Assembly: GCA_010909165.1 (NCBI GenBank)
Contig: MU008164.1
Location: forward strand, 682,001 to 746,000
Direction: 5' to 3'
Length of the DNA: 64,000 nt
Source of the DNA: Anthoceros angustus
Taxonomy: Eukaryota > Plantae > Anthocerotophyta
Positions 12,424 through 50,138 of this stretch are shown in pieces; the first letter of the stretch is position 1; each line of letters opens with the position of its first letter. The notes under the pieces are model-generated. The model did not search any database. It worked only from the letters and a program-made list of their open reading frames with translations, and was not told the DNA's origin. The position numbers and the translations under genes are program-made.

Positions 12424-13380
12424 GCGTGATTGAGTTGTTGTCCGGGGTGAGTCCTCAGTTGCAGCCCACATATCTTTCTATGTGTGGGTTGCAGCTGTTT
12501 TTGGTAATGTAAGGTTCCATCCCCTGAGCATTGCAGCTGCAGGAAACTCAAATGCGTGTGGCACTGCTGTGGGCTGTGCATGAACTGCATGTCGCGAGGG
12601 ACAAGGGCTTGGAGAGCATGGACGTCCTCCCCGATATGTACCGCCTGCATCTGGTGTTGACGACATTGTGCCAGGAGTGCAGGAGTAGGGGGGAGGCACT
12701 GCCCGAGTACCTGCAGCAGTAGACGCAGGCTGAAGCCACATAGTGGGTGTGGACAGGGATCAACTTGCTCCGTTATGTGGTGCAGTAGGCCCTTTGAACT
12801 TTTCACTTATGCATTGCAGGCCTTTTTGAGTGCCTTGTATATGTGTGATTGTTTTCATGGAAGCCCTTCTTGTATTGGTCCTTGTAGTACAAGCTTGTTT
12901 GATGCCAGTGCTATGTGAACCGCACCCCATAGCCAGCGATGTCGTTACTGACCATGTGTGATGCCAAACTAAACCTACAGTTCAAAGAGCGACTCGCCAA
13001 TAAAATGACAAACCTGGTTTGTGGGGCAGGAGCCTAGAAAATCTGCAGTTAAACTGCAAATGCGACCTCCGCGAGAGGTATAAATGTGCAGCTCATGCGC
13101 AGTGAAATCCCTACACCAGCATAATTGTCACCAAACCCAGTGAGCCACCCGGAAAATTGAGGAAAAAATGTGGCTCAAAAGAGAGTGAGCAGAGTCGGCA
13201 GACGTCACATCAAGGCGTCACATATGGCAGATGTATTCCGATGGAGACCCCACCGGAAGAATCGAGGCAAAAGAAAGAAAGAAATGCCCGCCTTGCAGCC
13301 ATCATTCCTTGCCTAGATCGAAGAACCAATCCTTACAGACGACTTGCGACCACGACACACGATATCTGCGGATATGTAGA

Positions 13381-13634
13381 GAAGAAGAAGAAGAATTTTA
13401 TTTAAGTCCACTAAGGACGGATTTCCGTCATGGGACTTGGTACTTAACAACTTGTACCATGGTTGCCTAAGCTACTTGCACCAAGGGCATCCATTCCCTT
13501 TAGGCACCCCATCTAAGTACCGATCCAAGCTCAGGATGCTTAATCACGGCGTTCTTATAAATGTGTGTCCATTTGGCTTAGGCCATTTGGACACGAGGCC
13601 CCTCCCCGATAGATTGGCCACACCCGCCTACACT
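13381..13634 (-). mobile_element. Candidate 5S-rRNA-derived SINE (SINE3-like) with RTEX-LINE 3' tail
   Basis: The reverse complement of 13503-13558 aligns ungapped with the local 5S sequence at 35110-35165 (35/56 identical; TTAAGC, GGATC.GTA and GATGGG blocks kept). It is followed by a short body, then the stem-loop + AATAAAA + (TTC)5 tail also found at LINE ends 29908-29959 and 35048-35100. The 5' boundary is uncertain. Confidence 0.65.
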
Positions 13635-14098
13635 TGGAGATGTACAAAGCAGGAATTCCAGGCTGAGAAATGGAGGGAAATGCCCGCCAAGTCTGCAGAG
13701 ATAACCGCCTGGGGACGGCACCAGCCTGGACCACGTCGTGCGGTCCACCATGATTTTTTACACTCACCAAGCCCCCGCACATACATGTCGGCAATCCGAC
13801 AGCCTGCCCCCCGAGCGGTGATGGAGGGGGTCTTCTTCTTCGCCTTGTGACGGCGAGTTTGTGTCGTTTAGTGTGCATGGATGCCCGAAATTATTTAAGT
13901 TTGTGATTATTTCGACCAGCTCAGCTTTAATTAATAGTTAGGATGCCTGTTTCTCTTTTTCCCCGCCAAAGGGAGCCTAGGACGGATTTAGGGTCTATCT
14001 CCACTGTGCTCCAAAGAATCTCGGAATACTTCCTGGAAGCAAGCAGGTTTCTACACCGCAAGGAGTATGTATGTTATGGAGGATTGGATTTCTGTGAA

Positions 14099-27249: not shown

Positions 27250-29959
27250 CATTGTCCTTTTGTCTCACTCTCCTCGGGGCCTTTAACAACAATTGAACAT
27301 ATTGTCCCGCCGAGGCAAGAGATTTGGAAGTGAACATATGAAGACCAAGGTCATGTTTTCAACCGGTAGGACCCGAGTTGATCGATGTTGAAGTTCTTCT
27401 ATGTTATCAATCGCCTTGATCCGTGCTCACATGTAATAATCACGAAGTGAACATATGAAGACCAAGGTCATGTTTTCAACCGGTAGGACCCGAGTTGATC
27501 GATGTTGAAGTTCTTCTATGATGGTGAGCATATGGAGATTATTCGATCTTATGTACAGGCGGCCTCTCTATGGCCCAACACTCTAATGGAAGCTCTGCCT
27601 CCATCGCATTGTCAAGGGGTGGCATCGGGCGTGGGGTTTGGAGCAGTGCTCTAGGATGCACATCAAGGACATCCCCACTCGCAATGGGCATTCCACAATT
27701 GTCATTCCCTTTGCATGTGATTTGGGGACCCTATCTCTCCTTTGGTACTACAAGGTGGAAGGTCCAAACATCTTTCTTCAGCCCCACATTGCATGTAAAG
27801 TCTGTCCCCCTTGCCATCTTTCGCGAGAATTTGCCACCTTCCGAGACTTGGCTATTCGCCCAACCAACTTCTTCTACCTCCTCTATTCTTTAGAAGAAGC
27901 TCAGTCTAATCACCCCACATCCACCCCCTCTTATCTCCTCCTTGTCTTTCAGTCCTCCCGGAAGTTAGCCTCTTCAGGTAACAAGACTTGCTGGTATGCC
28001 CAGTCTTCCTCCTGGCTCGAGAAGTTTGGATATAGTCTTGAGAGTCTTCAATCTTCAAAACCTATTCATCATTCACATAGGTTAGATAGAAATTTATATT
28101 TTGCAAATAAGGCTTTTGAAGCCACATCCTACACATCCCATTTATCTCATCATGAGCTTGAAAATTTTGATGCCGTTCTAAATTCTCTTTTGATTGTCAA
28201 GAATTCTGTGCTTGAGTTCTCTAGTAGTCTTACATCTCGCTTGGATAGGTTTGAGAAACAAAGAGAATCTGACCTCGTGTTAGTAGTTGACATAGAGCTC
28301 GACATAAAGAAACATTGCGAGGAACTTTAAAATGCTGACTGAGCAGATTGCTCACTCGATCTTTCCCTCCAACTCTTTTCTTCCTCCTCTCCGAATCGCT
28401 AACCTTTCGAGTCCTTCATATTCTCATTGCTAATTCTCCCGCTCCATCTTATATGCAAATGACATTGTCCTTTTGTCTCACTCTCCTCAGGGCCTTTAAC
28501 AACAATTGAACATATTGTCCCGCTTCTGCGAGGCAAGAGATTTGGAAGTGAACATGAAGAAGACCAAGGTCATGTTTTTCAACCGGCGGGACCCAGTTGA
28601 TCAGATGTTGAAGTTCTTCTATGATGGTGAGCATATGGAGATTGTTCGATCTTATGTACCTGGGCGGCACTCTCTATGGCCCAACACTCTAATGGAAGCT
28701 CTCTGCCTCCGCTCGCATTGTCCAAGGGGTGGCATCGGCGTGGGGTTTGGAGACAGTGCTCTAGGATGCACATCAAGGACATCCCCACTCGCAATGGGCA
28801 TTCCACAATTGTCATTCCCTTTGCATGTGATTTGGGGACCCTATCTCTCCTTTGGTACTACAAGGTGGAAGAGGTCCAAACATCTTTTCTTCAGCCCCAC
28901 ATTGCATGTAAGAAGTCTGTCCCCCTTGCCATCTTTCGTGCAGAATTTGCCACCTTCCCGCTTGAACTTGACGCTATTTCGCCCAACCAACTTCTTCTAC
29001 CTCCTCTATTCTTTAGAAGAAGCTCAGTCTAATCACCCCACATCCACCCCCTCTTATCTCCTCCTTGTCTTTCAGTCCTCCCGGAAGTTAGCCTCTTCAG
29101 GTAACAAGACTTGCTGGTATGCCCAGTCTTCCCGCTCGAGAAGTTTGGATATAGTCTTGAGAGTCATGTGGCAAAGTTCGAGCTACAAGGGCTAAATCGG
29201 CCTCATGTGGGGTCATAATTCTAGAGTCGAGGCGGCCATACGGATGTTAGCCTCTTGGGTAACAAGACTTCTTGGTATGCCCGATCTTCCTCACAGCTCG
29301 AGAAGTTTGGATATAGTCTTGAGAGTCTTCAAGCCCACACCCTCTTCCGTTCCCCCCCTCCACAGATAAGTCCATCCGCCTTGAGTTGCAAACTACATAT
29401 TTGTCTTATGCCTAGTCTCCTATCTTTCCCTTACCCACTAAGCTCGATACCTATAAACAACATTTTTGCACCCTTTCCAACTTTGGGAAACCAGAGTATT
29501 TCCTCTCTATCTTCACCCATGTGTCTTTCAAGCTTAGGATGATTCTGAGGTCATCTTAGGTGTCACATCGTCTCGATTGGGACCCGTGGATGGCTATGTC
29601 CAAATCCACTAAAAGAGTCGAATTGCGGGTTATGCAACAAGGGTGTTGAGATTGAAGAACACTTTGTGTTCCTGTCCCATTATGAAGATGTCGGGCATAC
29701 TTTTATGAAATCTATTTACTGACTTGATCTTCACTCGGGGTTTTCTCTTTTCCTAACCATTATTACGTGTTTGCTTGAAAAAATGTGGGAAGTGACCATA
29801 TTCAACTTTTCAACACGATGGTAATTATGTACAACAACACTAGTTTCAAGGCCGGACTCTAAATAGCAGTTAATTCTCATTATGCCCTTTGTGTAACTCA
29901 TCAATTCGGTCCATGGCGGAAATCCATCCTAGTGGACTTAAATAAAATTCTTCTTCTTC
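27250..29959 (+). mobile_element. RTEX/L2-like non-LTR retrotransposon fragments (RT and 3' end), internally duplicated
   Basis: ILYANDIVLLSHSPQGL*QQLNILSRFCEARDLEVNMKKTKVMFFN (RT motif region). The 3' end has AATAAAA(TTC)n at about 29941-29959. Confidence 0.85.
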
Positions 29960-30032
29960 CCGAATATTATCGAACTCAGCAGTTAAGCGCCCTTGGGCGG
30001 ATCGATTGGGATGGGTGACCTCCGGGAAGTCC
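29960..30032 (+). rRNA. 5S rRNA 3' fragment (pseudogene), copy A
   Basis: AGTTAAGCGCCCTTGGGCGG...GGGATGGGTGACCTCCGGGAAGTCC, followed by a T-rich terminator-like tract. Confidence 0.85.
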
Positions 30033-30555
30033 AGTCTTCCTCTCTCCATTTTCATTTTCTTTCCTTTTTTCACATCGGTAGAATAAATAAAACCCAACTC
30101 CTTTTTCCTTCATTACATCACACATTATATGACATGCTCATTTTAGAATTCAATACTTTTCTCATTCTTAGAGAATTCAATAGCCATTCGCTGATTCCTA
30201 GATGATTCAATCGCCATTTACTCATTCCTAGAGAATTCAATCACCATTTGCTCATTCCTAGAATTCAATCGCCATTTGCTCTTCCTAGAATTCAATCACC
30301 ATTTGCTGCCTACGTTATTCAATCACCCATTTGTTGCCCTGCCCTGCCTGCCGTCCACTTTAATCACCCTTTATTAAAGGTTGAACAAAATGACACATAC
30401 ACGCCGTCACAAACACTGCTCGGGGGGCTGCCGGCGACCAAGGCAGGCACGGGAATATGGAATGAACTGGCGGATGTGAGTGGGGCGGGGTGTTGTGCAA
30501 TGTGGACAACCTTGGTGCACTAGGTGTGCTCATACCAAGTTCCGATTGACTACAA

Positions 30556-31820
30556 GCCTCTTGGGTAACAAGACTTCTTGGTATGCCCGATCTTCCTCAC
30601 AGCTCGAGAAGTTTGGATATAGTCTTGAGAGTCTTCAAGCCCACACCCTCTTCCGTTCCCCCCCTCCACAGATAAGTCCATCCGCCTTGAGTTGCAAACT
30701 ACATATTTGTCTTATGCCTAGTCTCCTATCTTTCCCTTACCCACTAAGCTCGATACCTATAAACAACATTTTTGCACCCTTTCCAACTTTGGGAAACCAG
30801 AGTATTTCCTCTCTATCTTCACCCATGTGTCTTTCAAGCTTAGGATGATTCTGAGGTCATCTTAGGTGTCACATCGTCTCGATTGGGACCCGTGGATGGC
30901 TATGTCCAAATCCACTAAAAGAGTCGAATTGCGGGTTATGCAACAAGGGTGTTGAGATTGAAGAACACTTTGTGTTCCTGTCCCATTATGAAGATGTCGG
31001 GCATACTTTTATGAAATCTATTTACTGACTTGATCTTCACTCGGGGTTTTCTCTTTTCCTAACCATTATTACGTGTTTGCTTGAAAAAATGTGGGAAGTG
31101 ACCATATTCAACTTTTCAACACGATGGTAATTATGTACAACAACACTAGTTTCAAGGCCGGACTCTAAATAGCAGTTAATTCTCATTATGCCCTTTGTGT
31201 AACTCATCAATTCGGTCCATGGCGGAAATCCATCCTAGTGGACTTAAATAAAATTCTTCTTCTTCCCGAATATTATCGAACTCAGCAGTTAAGCGCCCTT
31301 GGGCGGATCGATTGGGATGGGTGACCTCCGGGAAGTCCAGTCTTCCTCTCTCCATTTTCATTTTCTTTCCTTTTTTCACATCGGTAGAATAAATAAAACC
31401 CAACTCCTTTTTCCTTCATTACATCACACATTATATGACATGCTCATTTTAGAATTCAATACTTTTCTCATTCTTAGAGAATTCAATAGCCATTCGCTGA
31501 TTCCTAGATGATTCAATCGCCATTTACTCATTCCTAGAGAATTCAATCACCATTTGCTCATTCCTAGAATTCAATCGCCATTTGCTCTTCCTAGAATTCA
31601 ATCACCATTTGCTGCCTACGTTATTCAATCACCCATTTGTTGCCCTGCCCTGCCTGCCGTCCACTTTAATCACCCTTTATTAAAGGTTGAACAAAATGAC
31701 ACATACACGCCGTCACAAACACTGCTCGGGGGGCTGCCGGCGACCAAGGCAGGCACGGGAATATGGAATGAACTGGCGGATGTGAGTGGGGCGGGGTGTT
31801 GTGCAATGTGGACAACCTTG
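30556..31820 (+). repeat. Apparently exact tandem copy (period 1306 bp) of 29250-30514: LINE 3' end + 5S 3' fragment (31266-31338) + spacer
   Basis: Identical ORF translations offset by 1306 (29870/31176, 29993/31299, 30248/31554). Confidence 0.9.
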
Positions 31821-31827
31821 TTGCACG

Positions 31828-31855
31828 TGGTGCGGTCATACAGGGCCACCACCCG
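31828..31855 (+). rRNA. 5S rRNA 5' fragment (about 28 nt)
   Basis: TGGTGCGGTCATACAGGGCCACCACCCG; GGTGCGG is complementary to the CTGCACC 3' end of the 5S fragment at 35184-35190. Confidence 0.75.
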
Positions 31856-33389: not shown

Positions 33390-33880
33390 CAGTTCACTAT
33401 TGAAACAAGACAGCTCTAAATGTGTGAACACTTTGTGATTGAAACTGGATAGCTCTAAATGAATGAACACTTTGTTACTAAAACTGGACAGCTCTAAGTG
33501 TGTGTCCAAAGTGGATGGATGCCCTTGGCACACCATGGTGCAAGGCTGCCTCGAGGGAGTAGATGCCATGAGACTTGTAGATGAGTGGATGCCTTCTCGA
33601 AATCTCTTTAGAATTCACTCCATATCCGACTCCTACTTGACACCATCAATCAGGATCACAAGAATTCACAGTTCACTACTGAAATTGGACAGCGACATCT
33701 CTAAATGTGAGGACACTTTGTTATTGAAATTGGACAGCTCTAAATGTATCATGAACACTTAGTTACTGAAATTGGACAGCTCTAAATGTGTGTGCAAAGT
33801 GGATGGATGCCCTGGGCACACCATGGTGCAAGGCTGCCTGCAGGGAGTGGATAACATGGGACTTGTAGATGAGTGGATGC
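33390..33880 (+). repeat. Degenerate array of about 38-bp units (…ACTGGACAGCTCTAAATG…) inside a larger duplication; second copy at 36829-37330
   Basis: Recurrent LLLKLDSSKC translation units in the ORF track. Confidence 0.8.
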
Positions 33881-34391
33881 CTTTGGCAAGTCCTATTATG
33901 ATAGGAAAAATTCCGTCCTTCTTTTCTACGCTCGATGTCCTCGAGAACAGAGACAGCCCTTTGCTGCTGTTAGGGTGAAGGTTGGAACGCTTACCAGCAG
34001 CCCGCCTACGGATAGATCACAGCCTTGCCGGCTGCCGTTTGGGTTGGCGGCTCACAGCTCCGGCAAGACAATGCACCAGTATAGGAAACCCTGCTTTGGG
34101 ACGAGGCGCTGGCCAATTCTGCACACCCCGGTCGGCCCAAACCCCTCCGAGCAAAATCTCCTTCTACCTTGTCCTCCCTTCAAGGAGTGACATCCAATCC
34201 ATACATGAGTTCATTGGAATTCCCCAATTAAACGTCATTGGGACGGATTAGTGCTCGGATGGGGTGCCACCCATCTCCTTCAGGAGGATTGGGGCTGTGA
34301 TTGGGGCTGTGCATACAGCATTGAGACAACCGTGGAGGAATGGACACTATTTACTTTGTGGAGTTTGATGAAATCTTGGGAACAGGTGTGT

Positions 34392-34605
34392 TCACCTGTA
34401 AGTGGTCACCATGGTGGATGAAGATGAGGGCTTCTTTTGCTACCTCGTTTCCCAGACAGTGTGAGCCTCCCAGAATGGCATGAAGGTGTACTGCCTGGGG
34501 TTATGGAGAAACCAATCCAGGTTGAACTTGGTGGGGTTGGGGTACAGCTCGGGATCCATGTGTACGTTTCTGTAGTTGCAAAATTTCTTCCTGTCTTTGG
34601 GAAAC
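34392..34605 (-). pseudogene. Cytochrome P450 C-terminal exon fragment (degraded copy)
   Basis: Duplicate of 37851-38072 with indels. Confidence 0.75.
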
Positions 34606-35100
34606 CAGTATTTCCTCTCTATCTTCACACCCATGTGTCTTTCAAGCTTAGGATGATTACAGGTCATCTTCGTGTCACATCGTCTCAGGATTGGGACTGA
34701 TAGATGGCTATGTCCAAATCCACTAAAAGAGTCCAGAATTTGCAGGTTATGCAACAAGGGTGTTGAGATTGAAGAACACTTTGTGTTCCTCTGTCCCATT
34801 TATGAAGATGTCAGGCATACTTTTATAAATCTATTTACGACAGCTTGATCTTCACTCAGGGGTTTTTTCTCTTTTCCTAACCATTATTGCAAGTGTTTGC
34901 TTGAAAAAAATGTGGGAAATGAAAACGCAACATATTCAACTTTTCAACCTGCCAGATAATTAATTATGCTTCACAACACTAGTTTCAAGGCCAGACTCTA
35001 AATAGCAGTTAATTCTCATTATGCCCTTTGTGTAACTCTGTCAATTCAGTCCCATGACGGAAATCCATCCTAGTGGACTTAAATAAAATTCTTCTTCTTC
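34596..35100 (+). mobile_element. RTEX-like LINE 3' end with CCHC zinc finger and (TTC)4 tail
   Basis: SHRLRIGTDRW...RICRLCNKGVEIEEHFVFLCPIYEDVR, then a 3' UTR with stem-loop, AATAAAA and TTC x4. Confidence 0.85.
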
Positions 35101-35190
35101 CCGAATGTTATCAGAACTCAACAGTTAAGCGCCCTTGGGCCGGATCAGTATTGGGATGGGTGACCTCCCGGGAAGTCCCGGTGCTGCACC
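35101..35190 (+). rRNA. 5S rRNA 3' fragment (about 90 nt), best-preserved copy
   Basis: ATCAGAACTC..CAGTTAAGCGCCCTTGGGCCGGATCAGTATTGGGATGGGTGACCTCCCGGGAAGTCCCGGTGCTGCACC plus downstream oligo-T. Resembles bryophyte-type 5S as I recall it. Confidence 0.9.
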
Positions 35191-35289
35191 CTCTCTCTCC
35201 ATTTTCATTTTCTTTCCTTTTTCCTGTCGGTATGAATAAAATAAAACCCAACTCCTTTTTTCCTTCTACGTACATCACACATTATATGA

Positions 35290-35500
35290 CATGCTCATTT
35301 TTAGAGAATTCAATCGCCATTTGCTCATTCTTAGAGAATTCAATCGCCATTCGCTGATTCCTAGATGATTCAATCGCCATTTACTCATTCCTAGAGAATT
35401 CAATCACCATTTGCTCATTCCTAGAGAATTCAATCGCCATTTGCTCTTCCTAGAGAATTCAATCACCATTTGCTGCCTACGTTATTCAATCACCCATTTG
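35290..35500 (+). repeat. 5S spacer sub-repeats (about 30 bp, TTGCTCATTCCTAGAGAATTCAATCGCCAT, about 6 copies)
   Basis: Direct tandem units, also present at about 30135-30330 and 31441-31636. Confidence 0.85.
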
Positions 35501-35694
35501 TTGCCCTGCCCCCTGCCTGCCGTCCACTTTAATCACCCTTTATTAAAGGTTGAACAAAATGACACATACACGCCGTCACAAACACTGCTCGGGGGCCCGG
35601 GCTGCCGGCGACCAAGGCAGGCACGGGAATATGGAATGAACTGGCGGATGTAGTGGGGCGGGGTGTTGTGCAATGTGGACAACCTTGTTGCACG

Positions 35695-35723
35695 TGGTGC
35701 GGTCATACAGGGGCCACCACCCG
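35695..35723 (+). rRNA. 5S rRNA 5' fragment
   Basis: TGGTGCGGTCATACAGGGGCCACCACCCG, one spacer downstream of the 35101 fragment. Confidence 0.75.
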
Positions 35724-37850
35724 CCCCTTGCCTGATGTTGGGCTAGGAGATGATGACCTCAAATAGGAAGTGGACCAGTGCCTCAGGACACGGCATCCTA
35801 AGTCTTTGAGTACCCTGAAGCTGAAGCAACAGCTCATGTTTCTGAGGATGAGGTGAGGAAAGCATGCACGCAGTACAATGTACCCTTGCTCTAGTTCGTC
35901 ATGTGGGCATTGAGGCGATCAAGATTCTGCAATCAGCGCCTGACTTAGTTCCCTCACAGTACTTACGTACAGGGAGATTCACAGAATTCACATGTTCTCT
36001 GACATGAGAAGAGGGTACATCCGTCTTAGCTGTCTCCAGTTTAAACAAGGTTGGAGCAAAGCAACCATATTCCCCTCAGAAGCTCAGAAGAAGAAAGCAG
36101 TACACGATAGACAGCTAGTTCGTCTTCATTCTCACGGTCGACCCTTACAACTGCAACAACCAGCTGCAATTGAATGCACACGGTACCCATCCTCACAACA
36201 ATGTCTCTTTCTTCGACCCTTGACATGATCTCCGTGGAACTGGATTGCCAAGACGGAGGCTCTCCGGAAGCACCTGCAGTCGTGAATTAAGCAGGCAGAA
36301 GGGAGTCAGAAAGCAGAATCTTGGATGTGCAATACATGCTGGATCAATGTGATGTCCCTAGAGGAGAGTTACATACACGATAGGTGATGAAATCAATGGG
36401 ACGGTAATGGCGTCAGTCTGAAATCAGTGCTACGGGACTGGCTACCCAAGACCATCGCACGACCGACTTCTGCAGACGCTGCACCTTCCCTCTCCCTCCC
36501 TCCCCCCTGCAGGCCTTCAGGGGTTGCAAGTGGTGATGGCTGCAGTTTCCCCTGCAATCAGCGCCTGACTTAGTTCCCTCACAGTACTTACGTACAGGAG
36601 GAGATTCACAGAATTCACATGTTCTCTGACATGAGAAGAGGGTACATCCGTCTTAGCTGTCTCCAGTTTAAACAAGGTTGGAGCAAAGCAACCATATTCC
36701 CCTCAGAAGCTCAGAAGAAGAAAGCAGTACACGATAGACAGCTAGTTCGTCTTCATTCTCACGGTCGACCCTTACAACTGCAACAACCAGCTGCAATTGC
36801 CAAGTTCAAGGACGAGATATGGAATTCACAGTTCACTATTGAAACAAGACAGCTCTAAATGTGTGAACACTTTGTGATTGAAACTGGATAGCTCTAAATG
36901 AATGAACACTTTGTTACTAAAACTGGACAGCTCTAAGTGTGTGTCCAAAGTGGATGGATGCCCTTGGCACACCATGGTGCAAGGCTGCCTCGAGGGAGTA
37001 GATGCCATGAGACTTGTAGATGAGTGGATGCCCTTCTCTAGCCGAAATCTCTTTAGAATTCACTCGGCCATATCCGACTCCTACTTGACACCATCCAATC
37101 GGGATCACAAGAATTCACAGTTCACTACTGAAATTGGACAGCGACATCTCTAAATGTGAGGACACTTTGTTATTGAAATTGGACAGCTCTAAATGTATCA
37201 TGAACACTTAGTTACTGAAATTGGACAGCTCTAAATGTGTGTGCAAAGTGGATGGATGCCCTGGGCACACCATGGTGCAAGGCTGCCTGCAGGGAGTGGA
37301 TAACATGGGACTTGTAGATGAGTGGATGCCTTTGGCAAGTCCTATTATGATAGGAAAAATTCCGTCCTTCTTTTCTACGCTCGATGTCCTCGAGAACAGA
37401 GACGGCCCTTTTGCTGCTGTTAGGGTGAAGGTTGGAACGCTTTACCAGCAGCCCGCCTACGGATAGATCACAGCCTTGCCGGCTGCCGTTTGGGTTGGCG
37501 GCTCACAGGAGCTCCGGCAAGACAATGCACCAGTATAGGAAACCCTGCTTTGGGACGAGGCGCTGGCCAATTCTGCACACCCCCCGGTCCGGCCCAAACC
37601 CCTCCGAGCAAAATCTCCTTCTACCTTGTCCTCCCTTCAAGGAGTGACATCCAATCCATACATGAGTTCATTGGAATTCCCCAATTAAACGTCATTGGGA
37701 CGGATTAGTGCTCGGATGGGGTGCCACCCATCTCCTTCAGGAGGATTGGGGCTGTGATTGGGGCTGTGCATACACAGCATTGAGACAACCGTGGAGGAAT
37801 GGACACTATTTACTTTGTGGAGTTTGATGAAATCTTGGGAACGAGTGTGT

Positions 37851-46246: not shown

Positions 46247-49200
46247 TCACTGAGGACTTATATAGAGGCCATGTTTCATTATGTAATGCTCAGGCTCTCG
46301 TCGGTAACGTCCGGTGAAGCATATCATACTCCTTATTCGTTTTGTGGCAAATATCCATGTGATTGTCGCAAAGAAACCCACGGTGAAACCGATCTCACAG
46401 GCTACCTTTGAAATGACTGGATGCGCTTCATCCCATTCATCTACTGAACTTGGGCTATCCCCTCCACCTGGCGGCTGGTTAGGAACTGAGCAAGGCCGCA
46501 GTGGAGCACCACAGAGCCCTGGATTTCCTGGGAGATAAGACGAGTTATCCAATGTGCTGAATTGCTCTCCAGTCGGAATGGGACCAGAAAGATTATTCGC
46601 GGCAACGCTGAAATGACTCAAGAAACTCAGACTTGAAAGATCACTGGGAATGTTACCAGACAGCAGGTTGTAGCTGATATCCAGGTACTCTATGGACTGC
46701 AGCTGGCGAAAACTGTCTGGAATGGACCCTTCAAGCTCATTGTGGGAAAGGTTGAGCATTCTCAAACCAACAAGGGCACCAAAATCTGGTGAGATGCTGC
46801 CCTCGATGTGGTTAGATGACAAATCAAACACAGTGTTCGCCTGGAGAATATAGTCGAATTTCAGCGTTCGACCAGCAGCATCAATAGGAACTTCTTCATA
46901 CACAGTAACTTGTCCATTGTTTTGTGCACTCCCGTTCCGAAACCCGGTCAGGCCACTGAAGATCTCTGTGGGAATTGTTCCGGTCAAAGAGTTGTCCGAG
47001 AGCACGACTGCCTGTAGGTGGGACAAGTTTCCCAACCAGTCGGGAATGTTCCCGGTGAAGTTGTTCCTTGCCAGGCTCAAAACGCGCAGCCCCGCAATCC
47101 CTTCAAGCTCAGGAATGCTTCCTGACAATTGGTTGTCTTGCAGGTCGATAAGACTGAGGCTGGTACAGTTGCGCAAACTAGCTGGTATAGAACCGTTCAA
47201 TGCGTTCCCTCGCAAGATCAAGGATACCAGACTGATAGCGTTCCCAATGCTCTCTGGAATCGGGCCTGGCATTACGATGACAGGACAAGGTGCTGCGTTA
47301 GAACTCCTAACAAAGCTGGAAAGTTTGCTGGTAGTCAGTACCTGGCCTGCATACACAATTGATATGGTGTGGCAATCATAAAGTACGTGCAAGGGAAATG
47401 GGCACCTGTCAATTGGTTGTCATTGAGAACAAGCCTCTGCAGAAGTGTCATATTTTCAAACAAGTCGTTTGGTATGATACCCGTCATCCGAGTATGCGCG
47501 ATTTCCAGAAGCTGTAGCTGTGATAAACGTGCAAATGACGCAGGAATACTCCCCTCCACGTTGGTTCCATTCAGTTGTAGTACCTGCAACTTGTAGAGAG
47601 AGCTAATGGAAGCGGGAAGTGTGCCGTTGAAGCCGTTGTTGTCCAAGCCGAGTTCCACCAGCTCCGTCATGTTCATGAACACATCCGGGATATGTCCTGA
47701 CATATTATTTGTCCCTACACCAAGTACCTGCAGCTTAACAAGCTGCTGAAAGCTGTCGGGGATGCTCCCGGTGAACTGGTTCGTTCCAAGATCCAAGTAC
47801 TCCAGTGGCAATTCTCCCAGAAAGGAGGGAATCGTACCCGACAAACAATTGCTTTTAAGGTCCAGGTGGGATAGGCTCCGGGGCTGTGACACAGATGCAG
47901 GCATTTGCCCTGTGACGGTCATGTTCCCTCTGAAGTCTGGCAGAGGGCCCGTGAGGTTATTCCTGACAGACGGAGTTCCTTCAGGTTGACGAGTCCCAGA
48001 ATGCTGGCGGGGATGCTGCCTGTCAGGCCACTGTTGGTGAATTCCAAGTACGTTAGGTCGGTGAATCTGCTGAAGAACTGCAGGACGGATCCGGAGTCGG
48101 TGAAACGGCTTGCCCTCAGTGACAAGGTGGACAAACGTGAAAGGCGAGAGAGGAATGTCGGGATTGGCCCAGTCAGCGAATGCCCCCCCAGATCCAGCCA
48201 TTCAAGGCTTGTGCAGTTTCCAATCTCGCTGGGTAACTCTACGTTCAATCCAGGGGTAAAATACCAGCCGGTGTACCACTGTATAGCTCGAAGCTGCTTC
48301 AACTGGCCAATGCTTCGTGGGATCTGGCCCACGAGGTTCCCATTTCCTCCCAAGCCAAGAAGTACCAAGCTGGAACAGTTCCCGAAGGTTGCAGGGAGAC
48401 TTCCGCTGAGCATGTTGTAGTATAGACCAAGTTCCTGCAGTTTTTGTAGATTCCCCAGCTCGGCAGGAATGGAGCCCGCAAGATTGTTGTGGCTTAGCCA
48501 GAGGCTAACAAGGTCGGTGCAGTTTGCAAGCTCCCGTGGAATGGAGCCGTTGAGCTGGGTGTTCTGCAAAGCCAGATTCTGCAGACGATAAAGGTTCCCA
48601 ATCTCCGGTGGGATACTACCCGTGATCTGCGTTTGGGCGTATTCGTCACCAGATGATGTGAGACCGATGCTCAGAGTGGTCAAGCTGGAGCAGTTCCACA
48701 CATCAGGTGGAATCGCACCGGACAGATCATTCTCCATGAGATTGAGTACTTCGAGGCCTGACAGAGCACCCAGGCCAGGTGGGATGGGGCCTGTCAACAA
48801 GTTGGCGGAGAGGTCCAAAATCTGCAGGTTACTGCATTGGCTTAACTCACCAGGAATGGAGCCCATAAGATTGTTGTGGCTTAGCCAGAGGACAACAAGG
48901 TCGGCGCAGTTTCCAAGCTCCCGTGGAATGGAGCCGTTGAGCTGGGTGTTCACCAGAGCCAGCTTCTGCAGACGATAAAGGTTCCCAATCTCCGGTGGGA
49001 TACTACCCGTGATCTGCGTTCGGGAGTTTTGGTCACCAGATGATGTGATACCGATGCCCAGAATGGTCAAGCTGGAGCAGTTCCACACATCGGGTGGAAT
49101 CGCACCGGACAGATCATTCTCCATGAGATTGAGAACTTCGAGGCTTGACAGAGCGCCAAGGCCAGGTGGGATGGGGCCAGTCAACAGGTTGGAGGAGAGG

Positions 49201-50138
49201 TCCAAAACCTGCAGGTTACTGCACTGGCTTAACTCACCAGGAATGGAGCCCGTAAGATTGTTGTGGCTTAGCCAGAGGACAACAAGGTCGGCGCAGTTTG
49301 CAAGCTCCCGTGGAATGGAACCGATGAGCTGGGTTTTCACCAGAGCGAGCTGCCGCAGACGATAAAGGTTCCCAATCTCCGGTGGGATACTACCCGTGAT
49401 CTGCGTTTGAGAGTATTCGTCACCAGAGGATGTGACACCGATGCCCAGAAAGGTCAAGCTGGAGCAGTTCCACACATCGGGTGGAATCGCACCGGACAGA
49501 TCATTGTCCATGAGATGGAGAACTTCGAGGCTTGACAGAGCACCCAGGCCAGGTGGGATGGGGCCTGTCAACACGTTGGAGGAGAGGTCCAAAACCTGCA
49601 GGTTGCTGCACTGCCCCAGCTCCCCAGGAATGCTGCCGTAGAAGAAGTTGAGAGACAAATTTAGGACAGCCAAATACTTCAAACCCCCAATCGCAGGATG
49701 GATGGAGCCCCTGAGGTTTAGGACCGTCAAAGTCACCTCGGACACTCGTCTTGTCTGCATGACATCCTTGCACGTAATGCCTGGCCAGGTGCAAGGGGCT
49801 CCCGGCTCGCTCTCTCTCCAGCCCGCGAGTGCGTTCGAAGGGTCTTCCACGATGCTTTGCCGGAATTGAAGCAAAATGGCCACCTCTGTAGCATTGGAGG
49901 GAAAGCTCAGGGTGCTAGTGCCTCCTTCGCTGGTGATTCCCTGCAGGGTGGTGTGGCGAGCAGAACTAGTTACAGCACTAGTGCAACAGGAGGAGTGGGG
50001 AGCAAGGCCCACATGTGTAACGTGGGTGGGATTCCGATGGAATGGCTGAAGATGGGATGCTGCTCCAAAGCGGACACTGACATGCACATACAGCAGGCTG
50101 AAAAGAAGAAAGGGCAGCGAAACCTCCATCCCGCCCAT
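46247..50138 (-). CDS. Leucine-rich-repeat receptor-like protein (signal peptide, LRRNT, about 30 plant LRRs, island, TM, short tail, no kinase)
   Basis: ORFs 47919-50138, 47335-48201 and 46247-47392. PCTWPGITC cap, LxLxxNxLsGxIP repeats, GNPGLCGAPL, and TM VACEIGFTVGFFATITWIFA. One frameshift at about 47962 and a GT-AG intron at 47266-47405. Confidence 0.92.

Follow-up and report, generated by a model that had tools for sequence, protein, structure and literature searches.

A high-copy SINE, probably of SINE3 type, with a 5S control-region-like head and a LINE-shared tail in the hornwort Anthoceros angustus

Results

Repeats and genes in the window

The window, a 64-kb stretch of Anthoceros angustus contig MU008164.1, carries on its minus strand a 214-nt repeat at 13381-13594, which is the subject of this report. 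Between 20000 and 46600 the window is a nest of dense segmental and tandem duplications of 97-99.6% identity (for example 21176-23308/25123-27258, 38163-40039/40031-41900 and 41882-44248/44240-46596) that encloses WD40-like ORF fragments. An LRR ORF of the receptor-like-protein type (739 aa, LRRNT_2 and many LRRs; best database relatives 42-45% identical) lies at 46247-50138 on the minus strand and is followed by more LRR ORFs.

A LINE is represented in the window by approximately 480 bp of its 3' end, plus duplicates. The 3' end of the 5'-truncated copy that extends from about 34620 to 35100 was placed at 35048-35100 (plus strand) by tail similarity and nhmmer, and its 5' break is adjoined by a cytochrome P450-like pseudogene fragment at 34473-34616 on the minus strand (a Pfam p450 match to profile positions 354-404 that, at 22 bits, falls just short of the 22.8 cutoff). 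Directly after the LINE tail stands a 5S rRNA sequence at 35100-35182 (plus strand; Rfam RF00001, model positions 14-109), the tail abutting 5S position ~27 at 35100. The preliminary description of the locus had taken this stretch as the 5S sequence of the window; it is indeed 5S-like, but it is a 5'-truncated pseudogene fragment that scores 29 bits, below the gathering score of 38. The LINE 3' end with its (TTC)n abuts the 5'-truncated 5S at the same nucleotide in three places on the plus strand (29911-30040, 31217-31346 and 35048-35182). As each of these junctions sits within a copy of one and the same ~1.3-kb duplicated unit (29249-30535 versus 30555-31841, 99.6% identity; 34595-35708, 89-91%), the three represent a single insertion event.

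Copy number and boundaries of the element

Repeat content was surveyed by mapping Logan contigs from four public runs onto 13250-13750 at a likeness of at least 80%. Run X1 is a DNA run of the source organism, and one of its contigs (915 nt) matches 13564-13750 with 0 mismatches; X2 derives from the same sample as X1 and is possibly RNA (none of the runs is registered as such), while X3 and X5 represent two further related organisms, so that the four runs cover three organisms (A, B and C, organism B being run X3). Contig pieces confined to 13380/81-13594 numbered 2,827 in X1, 140 in X2, 983 in X3 and 582 in X5. Depth was zero in all four runs over 13250-13368, and 13607-13750 was covered at single-copy depth and in X1 only. 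Loose contig ends at 13380 and 13594 showed a consensus agreement of only 0.37-0.43, hence the flanks differ between copies. The ends of the pile-up, seen in all four runs and three organisms, together with the unique flanks thus define an element of 214 nt at 13381-13594 (minus strand). The 5' end had previously been set at 13634; the pile-up stops at 13594, and the 40 nt from 13595 to 13634 are unique flank.

This revision of the 5' end also bears on the degenerate target site duplication that had been proposed. The two strings, GGATATGTAGA and GGAGATGTACA, are present and match at 9/11 positions, but they do not constitute a target site duplication because the upstream one lies 42 nt beyond the true end of the element. 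Direct repeats of at least 6 nt flanking the true ends at 13381 and 13594 were not found. Zebrafish SINE3 is likewise devoid of target site duplications (PMC7315354), and their absence therefore does not disqualify the element as a SINE.

Multiplicity was evident from the thousands of contig pieces in the source run and the hundreds in the two related organisms, and no second copy was detected within the 64-kb window by similarity searches and nhmmer. The element is short (214 nt), non-coding, dispersed and high-copy according to the contig survey, with defined ends, as is characteristic of SINEs. For comparison between organisms we used majority sequences (A, B and C), each being the window copy with the majority substitutions from the contig survey introduced and not a consensus of individual copies. 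The window copy differs from the organism A majority at two sites only, 13494 and 13526, and 719 contig pieces of X1 are at least 99% alike, which indicates that the family has been active recently and that the window copy is young.

An extra G after 13463, present in approximately 38% of the family depth of organism A, accounts for many loose ends at 13463/13464 and marks a subfamily. In organism B (X3), a few contigs join 13542, 13543 or 13560 to 13380-13383, such that a 5'-truncated SINE copy begins right after the (TTC)n of another copy. These joints may reflect insertion into (TTC)n tails or short arrays in head-to-tail order; they are consistent with frequent premature arrest of reverse transcription and possibly point to a liking for (TTC)n targets.

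Anatomy of the 214-nt element

Positions within the element are numbered on the minus strand, position p corresponding to window coordinate 13595-p. Positions 1-30 (13565-13594) form a predicted hairpin, composed of a 7-bp stem, an internal loop and a 4-bp stem in both MFE and centroid folds; its sequence is not 5S-like, positions 1-34 as a whole being unrelated to 5S. The 5' 43 nt (13552-13594) showed no variant at a frequency of at least 10% in any run. Positions 35-101 (13494-13560) resemble the 5S internal control region and comprise a first 5S-like block, TTATAAGAACG (positions 35-45), an A-box-like block, ATTAAGCATCC (positions 51-61, 13534-13544, with TTAAGC at 52-57), an intermediate element (IE), GATCGGTAC (positions 70-78), which together with the C-box-like block TTAGATGGGGTGCC (positions 79-92) occupies 13503-13525, and GGGAA at positions 97-101. 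The body or linker that follows (positions 102-158, 13437-13493), delimited by the point of contig divergence and by the fold, is unlike 5S or LINE and contains a predicted hairpin, GGTAC-N10-GTACC, at 13439-13458. Positions 159-199 (13396-13436) constitute a tail that matches the LINE end and carries a stem-loop and AATAAA; in the predicted fold the stem-loop reads GACGG-AAAT-CCGUC within GUCC...GGAC. The element terminates in a (TTC)5 microsatellite (positions 200-214, 13381-13395), read directly from the sequence.

TTTT is absent from the window copy and from all majority sequences, which is compatible with the predicted transcription by Pol III. Compensatory changes in the tail stem-loop numbered zero among the SINE and three LINE tails, sequences that are too similar to reveal covariation. 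A helix-I-like pairing of GCCTAAGC with GCTTAGGC was dropped since its arms (positions 12-20 and 123-130) are out of 5S register. Viral contigs searched with the 30-nt 5' hairpin yielded no match. A search of metagenome contigs with the 19-nt C-box block returned two matches, both of which were chance 21-nt matches in bacterial-looking coding sequence.

The head resembles the 5S internal control region in register

The minus-strand string on which the proposal of a 5S origin was built is found at 13558-13503, and its gapless alignment to 35110-35165 gives exactly the 35/56 identities reported. The match continues through GGGAA, as had been noted, to 43/67 (64% identity; 13560-13494 versus 35108-35174), the 5S reference in these comparisons being the pseudogene fragment at 35100-35182 and not an intact 5S gene of the organism. 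To obtain a null distribution, the 67-nt 5S segment was placed without gaps at all ~128,000 positions on both strands of the 64-kb window (mean 16.7, sd 3.5). The placement on the element lies 7.5 sd above this mean. Scores of at least 38 were reached by the 5S fragment, the element, and a second 5S-like sequence at 34211 that is duplicated at 37668, and by no other placement; the best unrelated placements scored 33-35. Placements at 29966 and 31272 also scored 35, but these are decayed copies of the 35100-35182 fragment. A local alignment score of 38, against a mean of 16.4 (sd 2.8) for the window controls, and an nhmmer match of positions 34-101 to 35107-35174 with the element as sole query (E = 0.022 for the 64-kb window) gave the same picture. 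By these measures the resemblance of the head to the 5S control region is real and not due to chance.

The likeness is moreover in register. In the Rfam 5S model UUAAGC occupies positions 53-58 and GGGAA positions 98-102; in the element they are found at 52-57 and 97-101, which places the mapped 5' end within 1 nt of 5S +1. The control region has no net indel relative to 5S, so that the spacing from promoter to start is kept, and the A-box, IE and C-box-like blocks fall within 1 nt of their 5S positions, in agreement with their earlier assignment to the type-1 promoter region. The three majority sequences differ from each other at 13 sites; positions 35-45, 51-61 and 70-94 are unchanged in all of them. 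Each majority sequence matches 5S at 41/67 positions, and the family majority carries GGGAG in place of the GGGAA of the window copy. The C-box reads AGATGGGGTG, compared with the canonical plant C-box AGGATGGGTG (PMC10853983).

Outside these 67 nt the element is not 5S-like (positions 1-34 and 102-120), and it is not recognisable as 5S across most of its length or structure. A search with the Rfam 5S model, by which the 5S assignment was to be checked, gave no RF00001 match on the element at E≤10 with either 601 nt or 151 nt of sequence, which argues that the 5S secondary structure is not retained and led us to reject a 5S gene or pseudogene as the identity of the element. Rfam over the whole window at gathering score likewise placed no family on it. 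The proposal of a 5S-derived SINE thus holds for a multicopy element with a 5S-promoter-like head and a LINE tail, but not for descent from a whole 5S RNA, the likeness being confined to ~67 nt. In our reading, what the element keeps is the internal control region of 5S, diverged but correctly spaced, and not the whole 5S RNA.

The same data bear on the most serious alternative, namely that the element is a genuine LINE-dependent SINE whose head is of unknown origin, or stems from a different Pol III gene, and matches 5S by chance or by convergence on TFIIIA/TFIIIC-binding motifs. The lack of an Rfam 5S match and the non-5S-like positions 1-34 would be expected of such a head, the matches are short blocks (TTAAGC, GGTAC, GATGGG, GGGA) with mismatches between them, and the majority sequences reach only 41/67. 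We nevertheless consider this origin unlikely, given that 43/67 without gaps stands 7.5 sd above a null in which unrelated placements do not exceed 35, and that the blocks match 5S in order, in spacing and in distance from the 5' end to within 1 nt. Furthermore, no other source of the head came to light among tRNA, 7SL and snRNA: Rfam with all families at E≤10 gave no match on 601 and 151 nt, tRNA included, and ARAGORN found no tRNA in 13300-13700, on which grounds a tRNA-derived SINE (SINE2) was also rejected.

A second 5S-like relic argues in the same direction. It was detected by gapless 5S score and nhmmer at 34203-34277, with a duplicate at 37660-37734 (both plus strand). Its portion at 34211-34277 (duplicate 37668-37734) likewise reaches 43/67 against 5S and has the derived GGGGTGCC in common with the SINE; between them the two retain 56/67 of the 5S positions, suggesting a common ancestor that was more 5S-like than either. 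About 77 nt downstream of the relic the SINE tail is weakly matched in collinear order (shuffling p about 0.025), and Rfam found no 5S match in the region 34150-34330. The relic may belong to the SINE lineage as one of its old members. Tandem repeats of ~280 bp were noticed on the plus strand at 33497-33543 and 33766-33920 (duplicates 36936-36982 and 37215-37369), stretches of which were aligned by nhmmer with SINE positions 61-182 at E values of about 0.02-0.03. They include GGATGGATGCCCT...TGGTGCAAG and the tail-like GCAAGTCC...TCCGTCCTT, and may represent either a related element or a satellite that arose from the SINE.

The tail is shared with a LINE and linked to the head in other copies

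The last 54 nt of the element are 96.3% identical to the LINE 3' end at 35048-35100, confirming the shared tail of the preliminary description, and 94% identical to 29911-29959 and 31217-31265; the LINE ends carry (TTC)n, as the element does. A second population of contigs, present in each of the four runs, has only 13381-13436 in common with the element and diverges at 13436/13437, and the loose ends seen behind 13435/13437 in each run correspond to this LINE divergence point. The diverging sequence in X3 and X5 resembles the upstream sequence of the LINE in the window itself. This second population bears the signature of LINE copies that have their tail in common with the SINE.

A CX2C...HX4C knuckle is typical of the C-termini of L1-type ORF2 proteins and is not known from RTE. 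Such a knuckle is present in a coding remnant of the LINE at 34657-34845, which gives a weak match to Pfam zf-RVT (20 bits; cutoff 27.5). The ~480 bp of the LINE seen here include no RT domain by which it could be placed. These features leave the earlier label of the LINE as RTEX-like without support, and on account of the zf-RVT-like knuckle we regard the partner LINE as probably L1-like.

Head and tail are linked in other copies, since single contigs join the tail to the 5S-like part: 13380-13523 in X3, 13383-13514 in X5, 13380-13493 and 13427-13593 in X2, and 13427-13586 in X1. Linkage across the whole element is drawn from such overlapping contig pieces. Multiplicity and head-tail joins together identify the element as a SINE and not as a chance chimera; the conditions under which the preliminary description was to be given up, a single copy or a head and tail unlinked elsewhere, do not apply.

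It could still be argued that the element is a LINE-derived or Pol II-dependent retroposon devoid of a Pol III promoter of its own, such as a LINE with an internal deletion or a processed fragment, that owes its spread solely to the LINE tail it carries. Of all parts of the element the tail alone is demonstrably functional-looking, and copies are found within longer contigs of the possible RNA run X2. We hold this to be improbable, however, as the sequence upstream of 13436 is unlike the LINE 3' regions of both window and reads, the promoter-like blocks show conservation, and the sharp common 5' end at 13594 with its invariant 5' 43 nt suggests a defined start and not random truncation. Finally, a Cassandra-type TRIM LTR, the sole 5S-promoter-bearing element so far described in plants (PMC10946416), or a 5S pseudogene next to which a truncated LINE tail landed independently, can be dismissed with near certainty, given that thousands of contig pieces from three organisms repeat the same junctions between head, body and tail, that the window holds no second LTR-like copy, and that the element ends in a LINE tail plus (TTC)n instead of TG...CA with PBS and PPT.

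Discussion

The repeat at 13381-13594 (minus strand) is multicopy, has mapped boundaries, joins head to tail in other copies and species, and shares its tail with a LINE. Its head bears a significant, in-register likeness to the 5S control region, as judged from the alignments, and the box-like blocks are conserved. Taking these properties together, we consider it probable that the locus is a SINE of SINE3 type, namely a young copy belonging to a non-autonomous retroposon family of high copy number. The element would presumably depend on Pol III and TFIIIA, an L1-like LINE of the kind found in the window is its putative partner, and its head may well descend from 5S instead of having converged on it.

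We propose that the internal type-1 promoter (A-box, IE and C-box) descended from a 5S rRNA gene with its spacing to the start site kept, and that recognition of these boxes by TFIIIA/TFIIIC-type factors would position Pol III at element position 1. The transcript would then pass through the ~57-nt body into the 56-nt 3' module copied from a LINE, with its stem-loop, AATAAA and (UUC)n; transcription could reach this tail because the 5S terminator has been lost and no TTTT occurs within the 214 nt. A reverse transcriptase supplied by the partner LINE, which is probably L1-like, would recognise the tail and copy the RNA into further sites through target-primed reverse transcription. In run X2, possibly RNA, copies sit inside longer contigs, and these are uninformative on a discrete SINE RNA.

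5S rRNA-derived SINEs include zebrafish SINE3, AmnSINE1/OS-SINE, bat MEG, springhare Ped-1 and lizard 5S-Sauria, as well as the lepidopteran HaSE3 and the fungal AfuSINE3. To our knowledge, the plant SINEs described so far are tRNA-derived. In their 2024 review, Garcia and colleagues name SINEs of 5S origin from fish, mammals, reptiles and insects and know of none in plants (PMC10946416). The suggestion that the element is possibly undescribed agrees with this literature (PMC10946416), and our literature search for reports of SINE3 in hornworts or plants found none.

Like SINE3 elements, the hornwort element is a short non-coding dispersed repeat whose 3' end was apparently copied from a partner LINE, and whose head has blocks resembling the A-box, IE and C-box of 5S, spaced from the 5' end much as they are in 5S. 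Its promoter blocks are more strongly conserved than the sequence ahead of them, as has been reported for lepidopteran SINE3 (Kojima 2024, PMC10886601). It differs from SINE3 in its host, a land plant, and its origin would necessarily be independent of known SINE3 because the review knows none in plants (PMC10946416). Further differences are that the first 34 nt have been replaced by, or have diverged into, a hairpin, that the tail ends in (TTC)n and not in poly(A) or a CR1-type repeat, and that the 5S covariance model does not recognise the hornwort element. A diverged 5S control region at correct spacing, in place of a whole 5S, has been described for Ajax and for many SINE3 families (PMC10886601).

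The head also invites comparison with the Cassandra TRIMs of plants and Ajax of nemerteans, which similarly captured a core of ~70 nt of the 5S internal control region. The Cassandra 5S core tolerates variation between the boxes with spacing kept (Maiwald et al. 2024, PMC10853983), and the hornwort element varies at the same place. However, Cassandra and Ajax are LTR elements with paired LTRs, PBS, PPT and the LTR retrotransposon machinery, whereas the hornwort element is a single unit with a LINE tail. With the tRNA-derived SINEs of plants (Au, TS, p-SINE, SB) it has in common a presumed dependence on a LINE whose 3' end it shares; unlike them it has no tRNA-like head, and a type-1-like arrangement replaces the type-2 A and B boxes.

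The vicinity of LINE tail and 5S in the window allows a more far-reaching scenario, speculative and in our estimation unlikely, in which the element would be the first SINE3-type family of land plants and would have arisen from 5S rDNA, the target of its own LINE. If the LINE lineage habitually inserts into 5S rDNA, chimeric 5S-LINE transcripts of Pol III would arise recurrently, and one of these could have become the master SINE. Were this true, a target-specific LINE would have recruited the promoter of its target gene for its own parasite.

The locus at 13381-13594 is one ordinary copy of the family. What it contributes is the register argument, a cross-organism map of box conservation, a second 5S-like relic and a hint of an L1-like LINE. 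If our reading of a SINE3-type element is correct, a recently active 5S-headed SINE with thousands of copies would be common to at least three related non-seed plants, and LINE-dependent elements would have captured the type-1 Pol III promoter in plants too, independently of animals and fungi. The family would then offer a natural system for determining what share of the 5S control region is required by TFIIIA in a plant, as well as a new marker family for phylogenetic and population work in hornworts.
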